NCBI GenBank assembly: GCA_964035545.1
Contig: OZ037768.1
Span: 9,270,741 to 9,334,740 of the forward strand
DNA from: Bugula neritina
Taxonomy: Eukaryota; Animalia; Bryozoa
Length of the DNA stretch: 64,000 nt
Direction of reading: 5' to 3'
Below, piece after piece: positions 11,101-35,100 of this stretch. The position numbers and the translations under genes are program-made. Below the pieces are notes generated by a model that did no database searches, was not told the origin of the DNA, and saw nothing but the letters and a program-made list of their open reading frames with translations. How positions within the stretch are numbered: the stretch's first letter is position 1; every line of letters starts with the position of its first letter.

Positions 11101-14100
11101 GACGCCGTTCATAACCAGCCCGATTAGCCATGTTTGACAAAAATTAGCTCGTCAGATAAATAAAACTATGAGAGAACTATGATAAATCTATCTGGGCAGA
11201 CAATGCACTTGAGAACAGAGCAGCGTCTATTAAACAACTAACTGAAAACTGTAATAATGAATGTGTTTGAAAGACTTGCTAAGCACACTGCAGAGGCTAT
11301 TTGTTAACACATTGACATACATTACAACCCAAAAAGGAAATGCTGATATTTCACTAAGAGTAATATATATCAATAAAAATAATATAATTGCTAGTATCAG
11401 AGCCACAACCCTGTAACGCTAACGTTGCCTTATAATATAATGTATTACTCGGTTTAAAGGCAGGTTTACACTAATATGGCTTATATTTGTAACACGGAGA
11501 TAAAAATATCTTAAAAAACATGCTGTAAGTTATAAATATATACTTTGCGTGAGTGTTTGGAGAATTATAGTTCTTGAATCTGCTATAAGTATTTTCAATA
11601 TGAGATAAAACTTTCCTTAGAAGTAAAATAGCAAAGGCAACTGAATGATCAACTGACAACAGAAACAATCGCCTGGCAAGCTCAAAGCTTATATATCATA
11701 GTTTAACTATGCAACAGATTTTGACCCATGAAACCCACGAGATGCTATGCAACTGTAGCAAATCTCAAAATAACAAACATATAAATGTTTCTAGAAAAAG
11801 TAATTGGTTAATTTGTAATATATCTTAAAAATATTTTATAAGATTTCTTGTAACTATTACAATCCATTAAAAAAATCAAAAAGCCATAACCATGTATTAC
11901 TTATTTTATTGATCTAAACTCACATCACTAGTAAAAACATAAATTTAATATGATACAACCTTTAGACCACCCATTACCCAACCAAAAAGAAAGAATAAAT
12001 AACTATACCTGCATCTTTAGTGTCCACGTAAAATTCATTGACTTCATTTGCAGTGCCACTAGTGAGACCATCACCGTAGACCTTCACCTTGTCAGCATAG
12101 CCTACTTCATTTCGAGCAGCATTTATCTTGAATGGAGAATTGGGAATATGCTCCCCATCTTTGTAGACATTTACGAGGTGAGTACCAGTCTCATGTGGGG
12201 TGAACGAGATACCTAAAACATGCAGTAAACCTGCCTATGTAGAACTAGAGTATCTGCAAGTTATTATGTGAGCAAATTGTATATGAGAGGTTACTTACAT
12301 CAACAAAATATAAACCATATAATAAAATATAAATATATAGTATATATAATATTAACTACATGATATATACTACCTGATCAGAAAAATACAATTTGAAAAT
12401 ACTTTTACGGTCAGAATTGTAGCACTAACAACTCTACACATTATCCAAGTATTATTTAATTTTGTATTTCAGTAAACTTGAAGCAAATGAATAGAAAGGA
12501 AATATTAAAGTGCTACACTGAACCCTGCCGAAACTGTCTTACCTAGATGGCCATTAGGTAGCTTCTTGAGAATGCAAGGTTCTGATTTGCCAGATGGAGC
12601 TGTGATGTCAGCCTGAAGCTCATGGATGTTATACTGTTCTACAGAAAGCGAAAACTCACTGGCTTGTCCCATAGACAACTGAGCTTTTTCCTTGTTGGCC
12701 TCACCTAAACGAACATTGGATCTCATTAAATGAAGCAAACTTCCATGGCAAAGTGGTGGCTACTTCTTAGCTATGTTTCAGTTAATTAACACACTTTTTC
12801 AATTCTTGCAACAGCATAGCATGTGAATATGAAAAGGCAAATGCAGGCAATAAACAGCAATAGTTGGAATGAGAATAAAAATATAGACAGATTGAAAATT
12901 ATTGTCTAAATCCTTACACTAAGTTAACTTCCATTACAATAAAAAAAGATATAAATGGAGTAATACAACCTATAGTTGGCAATCACACAAATCAAAAAGA
13001 GCTAAGAACCACTCTATTATCACTACACTACAGCTGTAGTCCTGCAATCTACACTGCTCACTGTTTCTGCTGCTTTTTACAAGAAACCCGTTTACAAATA
13101 ATGTGACATGTATATTACTATCACAAAATTAACAAGCATTGAAGCAGAAAACATGTGAGCAATGCTTCAGAAAGCAGTTTATCTAACTGCTAACAAAACA
13201 TAATCACAACAGACAGAATAAAAGAAATAGGTCATTAAAGCCTGAATGTCATAGCAATAAATAGAGATATCAAGTTTATTAGGGTTATTGGGGAGTGTCT
13301 AGTGTCTCATGAATACAGCAACAATTAAATCAAATTTAGTAGGTGCCAGTTAACCAAGCATAGTGTATGACAACAATAACTAACTATTCAACTGAAACAC
13401 AGTAAAATATCTAATCAAAATATAAGTGAGAAAACAGAGAGTAACAGCATTGAAGGAAATGAATAGATATTTATAATGGTGAGTGGAACTTCAAAGCAGC
13501 ACTACTAATATGAGTTAATTGCAAGGAACTCTTGAGTGCTGATTGCACATCTCCTTCAACATTAATCAAGATGATAACTCCAATATAGAAATATTCATCA
13601 GTAAATGATAAAAAGCTTGTGAGAAGTGCAGGAGTGTAGAGAAAACAAAGTTTTCCAAAGATGCCTCGTAATTTTGTTTAACATTACAAGTATTGAAATA
13701 ATGCCTTTATTGGGTTATATGGACATTTTGGAAAACTTTATTCCGAGTTGGTGAAACATCAATGACAGTAATTGATCAAAGCACTCGAAAGAAACTTTTA
13801 CTAGAGAAGCTAACACAATAGAATGCCGCAGACATACCTGATAGGTTCTCTAGAAGAATCAGCACATCATACGTTAACATTTACAATGTAATTCAAATAG
13901 CAGTGCATATGTTATGCTATAATACAGGACAATTAACGGAGAATACAAATAGGAGTCGTCACAACAATGTAGGGCACGCGACATACATCTTGTACTAGGA
14001 GAAAACCTACGTCCTGTACTAGGAGTCATCTGCCGGGATATTGTGGAATTCATGCACCTACCTGCGATGTATGAGGTGAATGGACTGCCCAGTATATGTT

Positions 14101-17100
14101 CATCATCAAACTTGACGACAACATTATATAGACCGGGTTCAGTGGGCAGGTAGGTGACGGTGCATGTACCGTCATCATTGTCTTGGCAAACAATTTCAGC
14201 TTTACTTGGGCCTTCCACAGCAAGGGACAAACCACCTGCAAGCACACAGATATTACGTGCCACTGCCATGCCACAAATATGTCACACATTGCAGAAAATG
14301 GGACCATGGACAGGACTCATGCGAGACAGGATTCTGGGACATCCACACCGTCCTAACCTGAAAGTGACCTCAAGACTTTACATACGAAAGGAGATCCGGC
14401 AATGTCTTTACCGGCACTGATCACCTTGACCTTGTAATCTCCGGCAAGCTCAGGGGTAAAAGTTACAGTATAGGTATTGTTTTGGTTGTCTGTGACATTT
14501 ACAGGGGTTTGCTTAGGACCTTCTAACGTAATATTCAAACTGCCTACATTCACACCAAACATTCCATTAAATGCGGCCTGTAGAAGTATGAGCTCCACAT
14601 AAGATTGACACAGGTGAGATGCATTTCAGTGTCTCAACAAAAGTTTATCAACACACCCCCGTAATAAACTCCTCCATACGGTGTTGAGAGCTTCACATAG
14701 GCTATACATGTTGCTACAAATCATTTTCTAGCAATGCTTAAACGGAACAAAGTCTCTTTAAATAAGATCTATAAGCTAAGCGTATAATCGACAATCTTTC
14801 GACACTAGAGCTGCTCCATTTAAAATTCAAATTATCTACATGACAAACATAATACCAGTGAAAAACTTTGTAAATTAATTGAACCAAATAAACAAACATG
14901 TAAAGTGAAAACTTTGCAAGTCAACTAAATCAAAGTTCCTACCTGCTCCAGCCTTCTTTGTGTCAATAGTGAATGAGCAAGGCTCGCCAGCAACCCCATA
15001 GCTAAGTCCTGGGCCATAAGCAGATACAACACCGCTGTCGACAGCATCTACATAAAACTGGTAGGGGCTGCCTGAAAATACAAAGCAAATACTGAATATA
15101 CTACAGGTAATCTGATTGCACCAATAACAGGGCAAAGGTGTGAATAACATAATTAATATATGAAAATATAACATCATAATAAAAACATGATGACAATAAG
15201 ATTATTAGCTTGAAATTTGTCACATGTCTTATAAAGTGGACCACATAAATTAAGCATGTAATTTATATTACAGATGTCAGCAACTGCTAAAAAAGATATT
15301 AAATTTTAAAATCTGTTTTACCAAACATGACAAAATGAGTTTCAATATGAAATACTACACAATAGCAAATTTAAAATACCTTGCAAAGGCTCATCATTAT
15401 AGAAGACATGAAGGTTGTGCAGACCAACTTCACTCGGTTGATAGTTGATTGTGACAGTACCATCTCCATTATCCTTAATCTGCACAGGACTTCTTTGCCC
15501 AGATGGTGCCTCTACTTCAGCTATAAAAACAGGAGACAACTCTCAATAGTAAACATATTGAGCTGTGATGTTCCATTTGGCATACTTCAGTGCAAAGTCT
15601 GGCACGCACATATCCATTGTATTCTTAGCATTTGATGACTTTTTGAACTAGAGTTATGATACATCAAAAAGAATTTCAGTACAGTATGTAGAAACCCTTA
15701 ACTGCTTAATGATTGATAAAGCATGACAGCAGTTATTATGTGGGTGTTGATTAACTTGACCCATAAACATAATGGCAAAATATTCAATGAATCATGTGAT
15801 GAACACTTTTCACTGCCTGTTCAATGGGTTACAAGAAAGGCTGGTAACAAAATCCAGCATACGACAAACAACTTCTGTGGTAGCTCATTTGAAAATTGAC
15901 TGCAAATGTGAAAGCAACAAAATGCATATATTTATCAGTAGCCTATATTCCACATACCCAAAACATAGGCGAAGACGGGTCCCACAGGAATAACGAAGTC
16001 CACTGGGTGAAACATGTTGAGATTAGGATATCCCGGAGCTGCTGATTGCTGTTCACTCACCTTTTCCATAGGGATAATATCAGCCTGCAGAATGTAACAT
16101 AATTGGCTATTCAACTGATTGAATAGTGCAAATTAGTTTTATTCATAATATCATAATTCAACTGTTGCCACAATAAATCATTTCAAGTTTAAACAAGTAA
16201 AATCAAGTAGAAACTCGGAATCAATCAAAATTATAGATCTATAATTTGCAGAAAAAAGGTTTTGGTAAGCAGAAATAAAGCTGGATAGATTGAGAATTTT
16301 CATTACAACTAAGCAGTAATGTAGTATTTCACATCTGAGTGTAGTTTCTATGCTATAGGCACTATGAACAGCATTTATGTAATCACTAGTGAAAACAGTG
16401 AAATTATCTATTAGCATTAGTATTAGTGTGTGTGAGCATAACTCTAAATGTTGATGATTAAATTTCTACAACTACTATAATTTCCAAACTTCATCTTTCA
16501 CAATATTACTTCAAGTAAATTAAACAAACTATTAAAATCTAAATAAGTCTATACAAAGACAATTACATACACGGTATGAAACATTAGGAAACATTGAACA
16601 GAAAGGATAGATGAATGTGTGCAAGACCACATAACATTCAGATTTAAAGACTGAAGATGAGAAGACAACTACAACGTTACATGATTCAGCATTATATTAG
16701 TGATTAGAAACCATCACCATAGTCTACTTTTATATTGCAAACACATTTCAAGCATTACCTCTTGAATTGCCAGTTCTTCCTCAGGTACAGCCTAGAATAA
16801 TTTAGTATTCAACATGTGACATATCGCCATATTAAGCATTAAAGTTTAATGATTAAACTAATATCACATAACACAAGCTAAAATAAGATAACTCATAAAA
16901 GTGCAAAAGGGCATTGCAATATATTTTCAAACTATTTTAAACGTATTTTACCTCAACTTCATAGTCGCCTTCAGGTATAGGAACTCCACCAAATTTGATG
17001 CTAATTCCATAACTTCCTATTGACAGAAAATAACATTACTGAATAATTTATTGAGTTCAATCAGATGATGAAACAGATAGCATTCTGAAGAAAGTCATAT

Positions 17101-20100: not shown

Positions 20101-23100
20101 AGGATCATTGCCTGGTACAACATTCACTTCTAATGGAGAGCCTGGTATTGGTACGCCATCATATGTCACATCCATTTGATGTGGGCCTAAACAGAACACA
20201 ATTTTTTATGTACAAGAGTAATATTTACATGCTTGCATAATTAATAGATTAGGTATGTTATAAAATCTCAAGTTTTTAACTTTGTAAAATATAAATAAAT
20301 CTAGAGAAACTAGCCAAAAATTAGGGTTACCTTCTTCAAATGGAGAGAAAGCAACCTTGTAAGTGCCATCATCATTTTCCTTAACCAAAGATTCACTTTT
20401 AGTACCAGAAGGCCCAGTGATGATAGCCTTCACTTTACCGTCACCAGGAGGAGAGACTGAGCTGGCATCAACAGTGAAGTCAGTAGTCGAATCCATGAAC
20501 ACATCTGAAATAATCAACATTTCATATTAGATGAGATAAACTAAAAATAAAGACACAACGTAATGGTAAAATTAATATTACGATTCACGGCAAATGTAAT
20601 AGTACTAATCTTCAGCATATATAAATTAATGAAAACAACAAGATTAACAACAATCCATGCAATTTCAACAGCTTTAAAACATGCTAATACAAATAAAAGA
20701 CACGAAATAAATATTGTAGCAGCCATGTCATGACTAGTAAGGCTAGTCTGGTTCAAGTTGAAGATAAAACAGTGTTAATACAGAAATTGATGTTAAAAAA
20801 CATAAAGTCTGCAAACAGCCTCCTCGATAAAAAAACCATGCGTTTTAAGCACAAGACAACTTGCAAAGCAAGTGTCTTACCAGGCCTTCTCGGAATTTGA
20901 ACAGGTGCATCAGGTAGGTCTAAACTGTCATCTAGTGTCGCATATGTGTTGAATGGAGAGTCAAGTACGTGTTCACCATTATACATGACAGAAATTATGT
21001 ATGAACCAATTTCTTTTGGCATAAAGGTTACCAGACAAAGATTGTTCCCCAAATCCTCTGCTTTCAACTCAGGCTTGCTAGGACCAGTTACTGAAAACCT
21101 GAGTGTACCGGGTCCAGATTTATTCATATCAACAATAAAATCTTGATAGTGATTAACAATGGCGTTTTTTAAGCAGCTTCCAGAAACATTCACCAGCTTC
21201 GAAAGAGGGATTGCATGATCGTCTGTACTTAAAATTTGTGATTCAACGCTGCATTCATCTATTTGAGCGTGTGTTGGACTAATCAAAGTTTCTTGAGCAC
21301 CAAGACATGGGGTGACCTGAGAATCAAAACCATTTTTTGAAGTTTCAACTTGCACTTTTTCAACCTGAAGGTCTTCAAAGTCTTTTTGAGAGACGATTTT
21401 CAAAGAATTACTGTCATCTAATGTTTCCGTATGATCATTTTTGCTGAATATTGTTTTCTCAACTGGTTCTTGAACATCGACAATTGAATCCGAACTAAAT
21501 AAAGATGGGCGATCTACAAGACTCAATGATGCACAAGTATTCACGTTTTCTGTGACTGTATCAACTGGTCGAACAACTGGACTTTCATAAACATGTGCAT
21601 GTGATTTGTCAGCAGAAAATCCAGAAATGGGATTAGGCGATTCATTCTGAATAGCAACTGGTTCAGAAGTCACCGTGTCATCAATATTGACTTGTTGATT
21701 CATTTCTTCAGTCATATCAGAGTTGCACCAAGTGGCTGTATTAGGCACATCGTCTAAGGTGCCAAAGGGGTTACTTGCATTGGTAACTAGGTCGAACGAC
21801 TCCTCTATCGAGTAATCATGTTTTTCACCAGTATTTTGTGCATGCAAATCATCAGAAATGTCTTGTATATTTACGCAAGGCGCAGAGCAAACTTGGCTAT
21901 CGGGTATGCTTTCAGCAATCACAAAAATATCTCCAAATGATAAGAATAACTCATTGTATTTTATCTTGATGAAGTATTTGCCAGCCTTTGAGAGAATATA
22001 AAAGGCTTTGAATCTCTTATCACCAATCTTTTCAACAGATGCCGGTACTGTTGTCCCACCTAGACTGTGTACTACAAAATCTAGTTTTCCTGGACTTGCT
22101 TCAGAAGTATCAACATAAAATTCTGTCACTTTCCCACAGATGGCAGATTCTAATCCAGCACCAAATACGATTAGGCCTGTATTTGAACATTTAAAGACTG
22201 GATTATTCAAACATTCAGTGGGAGTTGTCGCAGAACTGCAAGCAATACTTGAAGGAGCTTCTGCATCATTTATTGATTCTTGTAAGGGTGCGTTTTCAGT
22301 CTTGAATATTGGGTCTTTTTTGCGCCCAAAATGGTTTTCATTGTTTTCCACTTTATCTGTGGCATGAGTAGTTTGTTTTGACGAAGGAGAATCACGAGCA
22401 GGTGCAATATGGGAAGAAAATGGTGATCCTGGAATCTGTTCATTGTTGAAGGTTACATTAATGGCATATACGCCCACTTCAAAAGGGATAAAAGTAACTT
22501 CTGATTTGCTCAAACTTAATTTTTTTAATGAAACATCGGGTTTACATGGGCCAATAATGTTGTAATCCAATTTTCCTAATCCTGACTTGGTGGTGTCAAC
22601 AACAAATGTGCTAGGTTTGCCAACTACTCCATGGGTTAAACCATCTCCATCTATCTTCACTCTAGAAACAAGGCTTGAGGTTTTTACCTCTGTTTTATAT
22701 GGGGACTGGGCCACAGGTTTACCATCATAAGCCACATCAATGCTATACATTCCAGAGATCAGTGGAGTGTATGTGACCTGACATTCACTAGAAGAAATTG
22801 TTCTGTAAGTAACAGTAGGTTTAGAAGGTCCATTAATATCGACTTGTAGCTTGTCAACTTCAAAATCAACTGCCCTTAAAGTGAATGAAACAGGTTTATC
22901 CACTTCTCCTGAAGTCAAACCTTCTCCGAACACTTCTATCTCTTTAGCTGCTACTGACGATGGTTTACTAATTGAGCAGAATGGAGATCCAGTGACATGT
23001 CTATCATTGTAAGTAACTTCAATACTGTAATTCCCTTCGTGTTTTGGAATATAAGTAACTTCTAGCTTTCCATAACCAATATTCTTAGACGACATTGTAG

Positions 23101-32100: not shown

Positions 32101-35100
32101 GGCTGACTAATCCACCCACTTGGGTATCTCAGGAATGCTGATTATAATGATAGAGTGGAAAACAATTACCTTCTGTAAACACTTCGAAATAAGTTTTCTT
32201 GCCGCACTGCACACCAGTAGCTTCCAAGCCAGGCCCTACAGCAGTCACTTTCTCTGCATCTCCAGCCGCACCTTCAACCTTCACCTTGTACGGGCTCTTT
32301 GGGATTTCTTTTCCAGCAAATTTGATGATGACCTAATAGCAGCAACATTAGATATCTCAACCAACACTGCAATTTATACCTACAGCTGTTATGTAGGAAA
32401 CATGAGAATATCAGAGACGTAGAACGGCTGCCATGACAAAATAGTACAATCATACCTCCAATAAAATTGAAATATTATACAAAAAAGTCATCTTAGTTTA
32501 CACAACATCATTTGTTAACTAGTCTAAGTACAACTTGATTCACCTGGTGATTAAGTATGCTGTGACACCTTGCATATGCAGATAGTAGTAACTCAGACGA
32601 AATAATTACACCATGCTCCATCTACCATAGCACATGTACTAGTCAACTGAAACTAATGGACACACTAATAACACTGAAGTTACTCACTGTGTACTCTCCT
32701 TCCATCGAGGGGGTGTATGAGCAGGAATAAGTAAGGTTTCTGTCGTTGTTGAACACAACTTCACACTAAAATCAATGAAATGCAGAACTCCTTCAGCTTT
32801 TCATAAAAATGACAAAATTTGACACGAGGTTTTAATATGGCTGTGCTTTAATAATTCTTTATTGATAAAAAATGGAAATCAGCAATTTGGGCACTTCAAC
32901 TGCATGACAGAGGATGCATTACGGACTAAGACTAGGTGAGCAGGCGGCTCTTTCATTTTTCAAACATAATAAGGTCAAAGCTCACTCAACAGTTCAACAT
33001 ATTGCATTTTATGCCAACAGTGACTTTCATGGACTGTAAGAAACTCTAGTTTGAGAGAAGTCAAATTTTATAAACCTCCATAATTTTAATAATGTGCAGT
33101 TCGAGGCTTTATACCAAGATGTAAGTTTACATGCTGCATTTAACTACCAGATTTGTTTTGTGGAAGCCTCAGAGACAACCATTGGCTAATACTGACTGAA
33201 ACTCCAGTTCCACGATGTTGGGTTTAGTTTGCACTCGGCAGTCATCTTTGTGAAGTCAGTGAAGTATTGAAGAGAGTAGTGAACTGTAGCTTATCTTTAT
33301 GAATGCCATGAATATCATTAAATGGCAGGAGAAGGGCATTAAACTGTCAGTAAACTATATACACCTAATTGACTTTTAAAATTATCTGTCAACTGCATTA
33401 CCTCTTCAGCTTGTTCATCAGCATTGACCACTTGGACAGTGATTTCTCCACGGCCTGCACTAAATGTCTCAACAGTAAAGTAAGCCGGGGCGAGCGAACA
33501 CACACCTTCAGGCTCAAGTCCTACGTACAGCATAAAGACATCATGCACCATGCATTAACTACATGTATAACTCAGAAAACATCGCATCACTTCCAACTTA
33601 GATGGAGCACAGGCTGCTATAGTGTATGCATTTCCCACACGTGACATACATAGCAAGTAAAAGGGCCTAAGGCTACTCCATTAGAAAAACAGAAGAGTTT
33701 TCACATCACTGCATGTCACAGCAAGGATACTCTGTTTAACCACTGGCAGCATAATATACCAGTACAATAGCAGTACAAACTTGTGCATCAAACTTCAAGT
33801 ATGCATGATGAATCTTGCACTTACTAACTGAAACTGGACCAGTATTTCAAAAAAAAGTGAAAGCTTAGTCAATCTCAGTAGGCCTTTAGCTCTAGCATTT
33901 CAGTGTGAATAAAGAAAGCCCACCTCCCTTTCCCTAACACTAGTATGAGCACAACTAACTATACCCAACCCTCTTAGGTGGTGCTTATCGTAATTCCTTT
34001 GGCTGTGATAAAATCAGCATCAGTCAGTTGATATGAATGGACTATAATGGAAAGCTAATACATTGTTATTGTGATGTTTAACATGAGGTCTAGAATTTTC
34101 TCACCATTTCTGAACGTTTCGGTATGTTTCATAGAACAGTCTATTACTATATATCGCTTTCCATCAACAATTTTCAAATTTGTTACAACATGGAGCTTAG
34201 CAATGTTAACTGAACTGTAATCATGCTTGAAGATATTGCACAAGACAGGTAACACGGGACATAACTTAGTCAGGCAGTTTTCCCACTTACGTTTTCTGAT
34301 TTACCACCAGGGTTTGTAACAACTACGCTGGGCTGGCCTTTGCCGGCAGCAAATGTATCTATTTTGAAATTGCAAGGCCGCCCCTTGCAATTGCCTTTCT
34401 TTTCAAGACCTGAACAGTAACAAAGGTGATAGCTTTCTAGGAATTCATTGAAAAGTTGGATATCCAACACCAGTCAGCCTGATCAAATCTTCACATATTC
34501 TTTAGTTTTGTGAATGCGAGGTTGGCTTGAAGATTAAATTGGCTATTCAGTGAATAATGTCAAACTCAAATTACAGGTCAGCTCTATCTATCTACTCCTA
34601 TCACTCATTTCATAAATACCAGTCAAAACAAAATGCATTTAAAACTTGATTTTCCAAAACATTTAAAGTTATTGGAGTGTGAGCAGATCAAACAAAAGCT
34701 GTTGAAAGACTCATGAATAATGGTGGAGCAACATGAGCATTTATTACCTATGTTTATATGATTTCAAATCTGACCTACAATAACACAATGCATCAGATTC
34801 GAATGTGGTAGGGTTTATACCTGGACCATAAGCCCGAACTCTGGCAGGGTTGGTTCTCGGTCTAAGTGGAGCACCAGGTTTCAGCTTAGCATTGGGAAAC
34901 TGGGACAAGTAGGTCATCATACTCAACTCATCAATTTTAGGATTAACCATCTCCTCTGGTTTTATAAGCTGCAAGTACAAGTGAGATATGGTTTACTGAT
35001 CAGCCACTCTACCACAAGGGATTAGGATCCACCCACAAGCCAAGTCTGGCTACTGTCAATCAGCAGAAATATGTTTAGTTTCATCATTTACACTGCTTTA

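Follow-up and report, generated by a model that had tools for sequence, protein, structure and literature searches.

A conserved pair of tandem-duplicated half-domain exons, with Rbfox-type motifs between them, at the Ig17 equivalent of a bryozoan filamin gene

In FGFR2 (IIIb/IIIc) and in egl-15 of C. elegans (5A/5B), part of the ligand-binding region of a receptor exists in alternative versions, each encoded by one of two tandem duplicated exons. In FGFR2 the swapped part is the C-terminal half of immunoglobulin (Ig) domain III. In both systems an mRNA takes one of the two exons, and ligand specificity depends on which. Here, we describe a comparable pair in a filamin gene of the bryozoan Bugula neritina, located in a window of 64,000 nucleotides (nt) from assembly GCA_964035545.1 (contig OZ037768.1, positions 9,270,741 to 9,334,740), where two adjacent exons, A and B, each encode strands C to G of the filamin repeat equivalent to Ig17. 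The locus is a well-supported, conserved pair of alternative half-domain exons that are tandem-duplicated, most likely mutually exclusive and accompanied by Rbfox-type marks, as in FGFR2. The best overall explanation, to which we assign a probability of roughly 0.6, is that these tandem-duplicated exons form a switch under Rbfox-type control. The motif (U)GCAUG is the Fox-1/Rbfox binding site, which represses an exon when placed upstream of it and activates one when placed downstream, and it governs FGFR2 IIIb/IIIc, egl-15 5A/5B and the mutually exclusive exons of alpha-actinin (PMC2777236). Within the intervening intron of FGFR2, Fox-1/Rbfox acts through this motif to repress the downstream exon and activate the upstream one (PMC2777236). 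Unlike FGFR2 and egl-15, the bryozoan case concerns a cytoplasmic filamin repeat rather than an extracellular receptor domain, the swap involves five of the seven strands, and we infer both exclusivity and Rbfox dependence.

Vertebrate filamins bind receptors and adaptors through the C/D groove of their odd-numbered rod-2 repeats, and vertebrates vary the groove region by means of separate genes and cassette exons. One known variant, var-1 of FLNA and FLNB, is a deletion between repeats 19 and 20. Another, the skipping of FLNB exon 30 (hinge 1), resembles the bryozoan case in that splicing in the rod 2/hinge region alters protein behaviour; one report links an FLNB splicing switch to RBFOX1 and QKI (PMC6103745). 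FLNB exon 30 and var-1 are, however, cassette or deletion events, whereas the bryozoan pair consists of alternative half-domain exons, and our literature search returned no description of duplicated alternative half-domain exons in a filamin. In its anatomy the pair resembles known mutually exclusive exons, such as the Dscam Ig half-domains, tropomyosin and alpha-actinin NM/SM, in which neighbouring exons that are homologous, alike in phase and almost alike in length replace one structural unit. The bryozoan pair differs from these in showing no enforcement based on reading frame or on U2/U12 splice-site type and no docking/selector pairing, and in that the copy which is conserved in one paralogue is the fast-evolving one in the other.

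The filamin gene occupies the minus strand of the window, from ~34400 down to ~5180. Its exons were searched singly, by reference, and never as a joined spliced protein. 'Ig17' here denotes the Ig17 equivalent and not an ordinal number, because the protein has extra rod-1 repeats. The exons and intron in question, in window coordinates and in order of transcription, are as follows.

15071-14943, minus strand: upstream constitutive exon, 129 nt, phase 1-1, encoding the end of the Ig16-17 linker and strands A-B of the Ig17 equivalent.
14543-14358, minus strand: exon A, encoding divergent alternative strands C-G, 186 nt, phase 1-1, with its acceptor ag at 14545-14544.
14357-14236, minus strand: A-B intron, 122 nt, with two GCATG copies at 14322-14318 and 14271-14267, a candidate Rbfox-type switch element.
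14235-14062, minus strand: exon B, encoding the canonical strands C-G of the Ig17 equivalent, 174 nt, phase 1-1.
12704-12543, minus strand: downstream constitutive exon, 162 nt, phase 1-1, encoding the start of the Ig18 equivalent.

The upstream exon matches positions 2-34 of the Pfam Filamin profile (E 4.5e-6) and ends in phase 1 at AAG GCT GGA GCA G/gtagga (donor CAG/gtagga; a slash marks an exon border). Either of the next two exons could complete the domain. Both cover positions 41/42-93 of the 93 positions of PF00630 (Filamin), corresponding to strands C to G, with near-equal scores well above the cut-off of 26.9 bits (exon A 55.2 bits, E 1.3e-14; exon B 56.4 bits, E 5.5e-15), and they are 39% identical to each other over 51 residues (E 4e-11). 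Both lengths are divisible by 3, and the tail of exon A is 4 residues longer. Exon B has a good pyrimidine-rich acceptor and the donor CAG/gtaggt; exon A ends in a weak donor, CAG/gttagg, with T at +3. An earlier note on this DNA had proposed two tandem phase 1-1 exons, 122 nt apart, each encoding strands C-G of repeat 17, one canonical and one divergent; coordinates, phases and Pfam positions, read directly, agree with that description, and domain comparisons uphold the contrast between the copies. Exon B finds Ig17 of human FLNB (80.7 bits) and FLNA (75.7 bits) as its top domain matches. Exon A matches solved domains much more weakly (Ig19, Ig17 and Ig4 at 24-28 bits, 28 being the maximum), and its assignment to Ig17 is by position only, between Ig16-like and Ig18-like exons. 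Against 5.8 billion proteins, exon A returned a single match, a 97%-identical genomic open reading frame (ORF) from a JGI metagenome. A scan of metagenome contigs with exon A found no relative, and a search of representative proteins with it found nothing closer than ~40 bits (a nematode Ig17).

The arrangement recurs beyond this one gene. A six-frame search of the same genome revealed a second, complete-looking filamin gene on contig C5 at ~14.82-14.84 Mb (L003, L006, L008), with the same layout of an upstream exon, a 183-nt exon in the A position (A', donor CAG/gttag), a 174-nt exon in the B position (B') and an Ig18 exon. The A'-B' intron of this paralogue (L003 1679-2237) carries a tandem repeat of an 18-nt unit, in three full copies, just past the donor. 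Genomic ORFs 88-95% identical to the upstream exon are present in other assemblies, and a word search with its ORF (Logan, ENA) led to ten genomic ORFs from other assemblies. The window gene (gene 1) has orthologues with the upstream-A-B arrangement in L010, L011/L012 and L015, and the paralogue (gene 2) has one with the pair in L013. One further contig, represented without DNA, shows two Filamin ORFs after an upstream exon. In addition, 2.8 kb of the window align at ~94% identity with L001, a scaffold from a JGI metagenome. Orthologues of exon A are thus present in L001, L010, L011/L012 and L015, with A' in L003 and L013; ORFs orthologous to the downstream exon occur in L011/L012 and L003.

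Conservation was assessed over six genes, representing at least four genomes besides the window. Between distant genomes, in four other assemblies, the proportion of synonymous differences (pS) is 0.63-0.97, which amounts to saturated synonymous sites, and reading frames, the Pfam signature and splice sites are intact in every A and B copy. The two exons evolve at very different rates. Compared with the window, gene 1 orthologues give a nonsynonymous divergence (dN) of 0-0.03 for exon B and 0.26-0.34 for exon A, which is about ten times faster; over all gene 1 pairs the ranges are 0-0.05 and 0.26-0.52, respectively. The exon B protein is the same or nearly the same in L010, L011 and L015, and identical in two species. 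Exon A nonetheless shows far less replacement than synonymous change, with a proportion of nonsynonymous differences (pN) of 0.22-0.27 against pS of 0.79-0.93 in comparisons with the window. Relative to the close scaffold L001, exon A differs by 4 synonymous and 2 replacement changes and exon B by 3 synonymous changes. In gene 2 the roles are reversed, with dN of 0.06 for A' and 0.27 for B'; by these rates, the paralogues kept opposite copies as the conserved one after gene duplication. The sequence comparisons support the view that selection holds both A and B and that exon A is not a dead copy. We regard it as very likely that both exons are functional.

The duplication itself appears old. 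In a maximum-likelihood tree, the A types of both genes separate from a group containing the B types together with the Ig17 and Ig19 halves of other animals (support 100/100), and the exon duplication therefore predates the gene duplication. On this tree, B represents the canonical Ig17 lineage. A-type exons vary in length across species (174, 183, 186 and 189 nt). An oyster filamin gene (L018) has an intron at the same position followed by a single second-half exon, and Ig17 is the same in all 14 RefSeq oyster isoforms; the exon pair is not general to lophotrochozoans.

The short intron between A and B carries the marks that point to a regulator. No 5-mer except GCATG is shared by the six A-B introns, and GCATG is moreover present two or three times in each. 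In total, 14 copies are observed against 3.3 expected, and none of 5000 dinucleotide-preserving shuffles reaches 14; the introns between the upstream exon and exon A contain 1 GCATG in 1366 nt. Copies lie in the alignable, conserved 3' half of the A-B intron, 15-36 nt from the acceptor of exon B, with some turnover between species. The intron measures 62, 68, 88, 114 or 122 nt in five of the six genes and 559 nt in the paralogue, where a tandem repeat is inserted; this long intron has one GCATG beside the donor of A and two beside the acceptor of B. The weakness of the exon A donor is also conserved. Its +3 position is a pyrimidine in six of six genes (GTTAG in four, GTCAG in two), whereas 11 of the 12 neighbouring donors carry a purine (A or G) there.

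These features suggest the following mechanism. The A/B pair would have arisen by tandem exon duplication, with one exon taken per mRNA, and either exon would supply strands C, D, E, F and G to the shared strands A-B, giving two versions of the Ig17 equivalent. Version B would be the canonical, almost invariant domain, and version A would carry a rewritten C/D groove, the peptide-binding face of vertebrate filamins, together with a longer Ig17-Ig18 linker. Exon B would be the default because its splice sites are good, and exon A, with its conserved weak 5' splice site, would need help for inclusion. An Rbfox-type protein bound to the GCAUG copies of the A-B intron could provide this help by activating the upstream exon A, and the same protein could keep the downstream exon B out by blocking its branch point and acceptor, as in FGFR2 IIIb/IIIc. 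A third state would join exon B to a conserved 12-nt microexon, making the linker 4 residues longer. Mutually exclusive use of A and B is likely on grounds of anatomy and conservation, and control of that choice by an Rbfox-type factor is favoured with somewhat less confidence.

Several observations weigh against this proposal. Taken intron by intron, the enrichment of GCATG over dinucleotide shuffles is modest (P 0.004-0.11), and the case is a joint one over the six introns. The reading frame enforces no exclusivity, since transcripts with both exons included or both skipped stay in frame. A search for docking/selector RNA pairing found only weak AT-rich pairs and nothing convincing, and the paralogue has a 559-nt A-B intron, so that steric hindrance is not a general mechanism. 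The database proteins that were found are all genomic ORFs rather than transcripts. Finally, a Pfam Fox-1_C (PF12414) search of the animal's own genome gave no match, although this is a weak test, as the domain is short, intron-split and poorly conserved and the search did not extend to the Rbfox RNA recognition motif.

Among the alternatives, the one closest to the proposed switch keeps mutual exclusion and replaces the regulator. Exclusion could be imposed by steric hindrance, by GU-rich binders of the CELF or RBM24/SUP-12 type or by another factor, with GCATG incidental or part of another signal. The A-B intron is indeed only 62-122 nt long in five of the six genes, TGTGT/GTGTG runs also recur in the A-B introns, and the Fox-1_C profile found nothing in the genome. 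Introns of 80-111 nt are, however, spliced elsewhere in the same genes, and neither GU-rich runs nor any other 5-mer share with GCATG the property of being common to and repeated in all six introns. The long paralogue intron, moreover, keeps its GCATG copies at the two places adjoining the donor of A and the acceptor of B. A choice made without Rbfox is unlikely, if still the most serious competitor. Less probable by a good margin is that exon A is an optional cassette before a constitutive exon B, so that the product of some or all mRNAs, with both exons included, would have one and a half domains. Co-inclusion would stay in frame, as both exons are multiples of 3, and nothing was seen that forbids splicing of the A-B intron. 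Yet an Ig sandwich cannot be completed by an extra C-G half that lacks A-B strands of its own, and strands A-B plus one half already model as a confident complete domain. Equal phase, near-equal length and homology are the signature of one-or-the-other exons, and a doubled half at Ig17 occurs in none of the 150 best filamin relatives, a weak test because they were ranked by summed repeat scores.

Two further readings deny exon A a role in a full-length protein. The earlier note had observed that read-through of the exon A donor gives an immediate stop and had suggested that the exon might end a monomeric filamin lacking Ig18-24. The A-B intron would then have to be retained, or the message polyadenylated past exon A. 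The stop is real: GGT TAG follows at once in the window, the paralogue, L010 and L013. It belongs, however, to the GTTAG donor itself, and in L011 and L015, where the donor is GTCAG, the frame reads on for 5 and 7 further codons. The 122-nt intron of the window has no AATAAA, the acceptor of exon B follows directly, and an early stop is expected from nearly any retained intron. The truncated monomer consequently has very little in its favour, and we set that suggestion aside. Even more improbable is that exon A is a leftover duplicate out of use. Its divergence, much greater than that of B, and its weak splice signals would fit such a relic, but six genes with saturated synonymous sites have kept its frame, Pfam signature and splice sites, and its replacement change lies well below its synonymous change. 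The preferred reading thus remains the choice of one half-domain or the other under Rbfox-type control.

For exon A to serve as an alternative, its half must be able to make a domain with the shared strands. The segment L010:690-1106 could be folded as a natural ORF because the intron between its upstream and A-type exons is open in frame, and AlphaFold was run on it with a 39-row alignment, the translated intron being included as a loop. The exon-coded parts are modelled at a predicted local distance difference test (pLDDT) score of 88-97, and most of the intron-coded loop (residues 47-71) at <50; this loop is an artefact and is partly modelled as an extra strand. Strands fall where expected, with C at LNITIEG and D at LRVTD, followed by E, F and G. 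The best PDB match of the model is 2BP3, FLNA Ig17 with a GPIb-alpha peptide (template modelling (TM) score 0.88 by target), followed by complexes of repeat 21 and repeat 19. By this model, the A half is compatible with the filamin fold, and the model says no more than that.

The C/D groove of human repeat 17, a common site for partners, takes up GPIb-alpha as an added strand; the same mode of peptide binding, as an extra strand in the groove, is known for human Ig17, Ig21 and Ig23, and repeats 16-17 form a compact, force-sensitive pair (PMC5484675, PMC2654154). Across species, hydrophobic residues still alternate along strands C and D of the A types, and most exposed positions have changed; the conserved signature of the A types comprises strand F and SPF-x-C-K/R-V in strand G. 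Given the retained hydrophobic pattern and the role of the groove in human filamin, a changed partner preference is likelier than a lost site, and the A version is thus more likely to have altered binding specificity than to have lost binding. The earlier note had held that splicing swaps or abolishes a receptor-binding site; the swap is the best reading of the evidence, while abolition fits poorly with the preserved strand C/D pattern and with an A-type model that folds. Binding partners probably change between the A and B versions. By analogy, this invertebrate lineage probably swaps the filamin groove itself by exon choice, as FGF receptors do for ligand specificity, apparently with the same Rbfox code. 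If true, the locus would offer a natural pair of domain-17 variants for probing the role of the exposed Ig17 groove. It would likewise show alternative exons evolving asymmetrically, with the asymmetry turned round from one paralogue to the other, and would add a further case of deeply conserved Rbfox-type splicing logic beyond model animals.

The third state of the proposed switch depends on a very short exon downstream of B.

13849-13838, minus strand: candidate microexon, 12 nt, phase 1-1, ag/AGAACCTATCAG/gtatgt, 212 nt downstream of exon B.

The candidate encodes E-N-L-S and would lengthen the Ig17-Ig18 linker by 4 residues. Counterparts of 12 nt in the same frame and with the same GTATGT donor follow exon B in L015 (ENPS) and L011/L012 (ENVA), and the copy in L001 is identical. 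A pattern search allowing up to 5 mismatches found no further microexon match in the window or the loci. An origin of exon A by copying of a spliced mRNA of B plus microexon is not supported, as A-type lengths vary (174/183/186/189 nt) and the A clade predates the gene duplication. Window positions 13796-13858 hold a 20-nt inverted repeat, 80% complementary with 23 nt between its arms, and the corresponding hairpin would enclose the microexon, its acceptor and its donor.

GCATG also occurs near other exons of the window gene. The distal exon of the Ig1 pair (start 33520) is preceded, at distances of 33 and 26 nt, by two TGCATG copies at 33546-33558 (GCATG from 33553 and 33546), an arrangement that matches that of the A-B intron. 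Three GCATG copies (20841, 20684 and 20660; window 20656-20845) fall within ~220 nt downstream of a giant 4.45-kb exon, where Rbfox sites promote inclusion; gene-wide there are 35 GCATG per 30 kb, so this cluster alone is not significant. One TGCATG at 14051-14056, 6 nt past the donor of exon B, is kept in L001 and missing at that place in other species. A wider and decidedly tentative picture would have cheilostome-type bryozoans possess a three-state, Rbfox-controlled module at filamin domain 17 (a canonical groove, the same with a longer linker, and a fast-evolving alternative groove). The motif would also mark the Ig1 pair and the giant exon, one regulator would re-tool partner binding and rod length in cell types such as muscle, and the paralogues would conserve opposite copies.

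Over window positions 13120-13480, within an intron, the window and scaffold L001 differ by about 1 in 330 nt, compared with ~5-6% in the rest of the intron; this near-identical block may be a conserved element or may reflect local haplotype sharing. In L011 (9664-10213), the intron before the Ig17 upstream exon sits seven codons further downstream than in the window, with GSPYQFY in the preceding exon.

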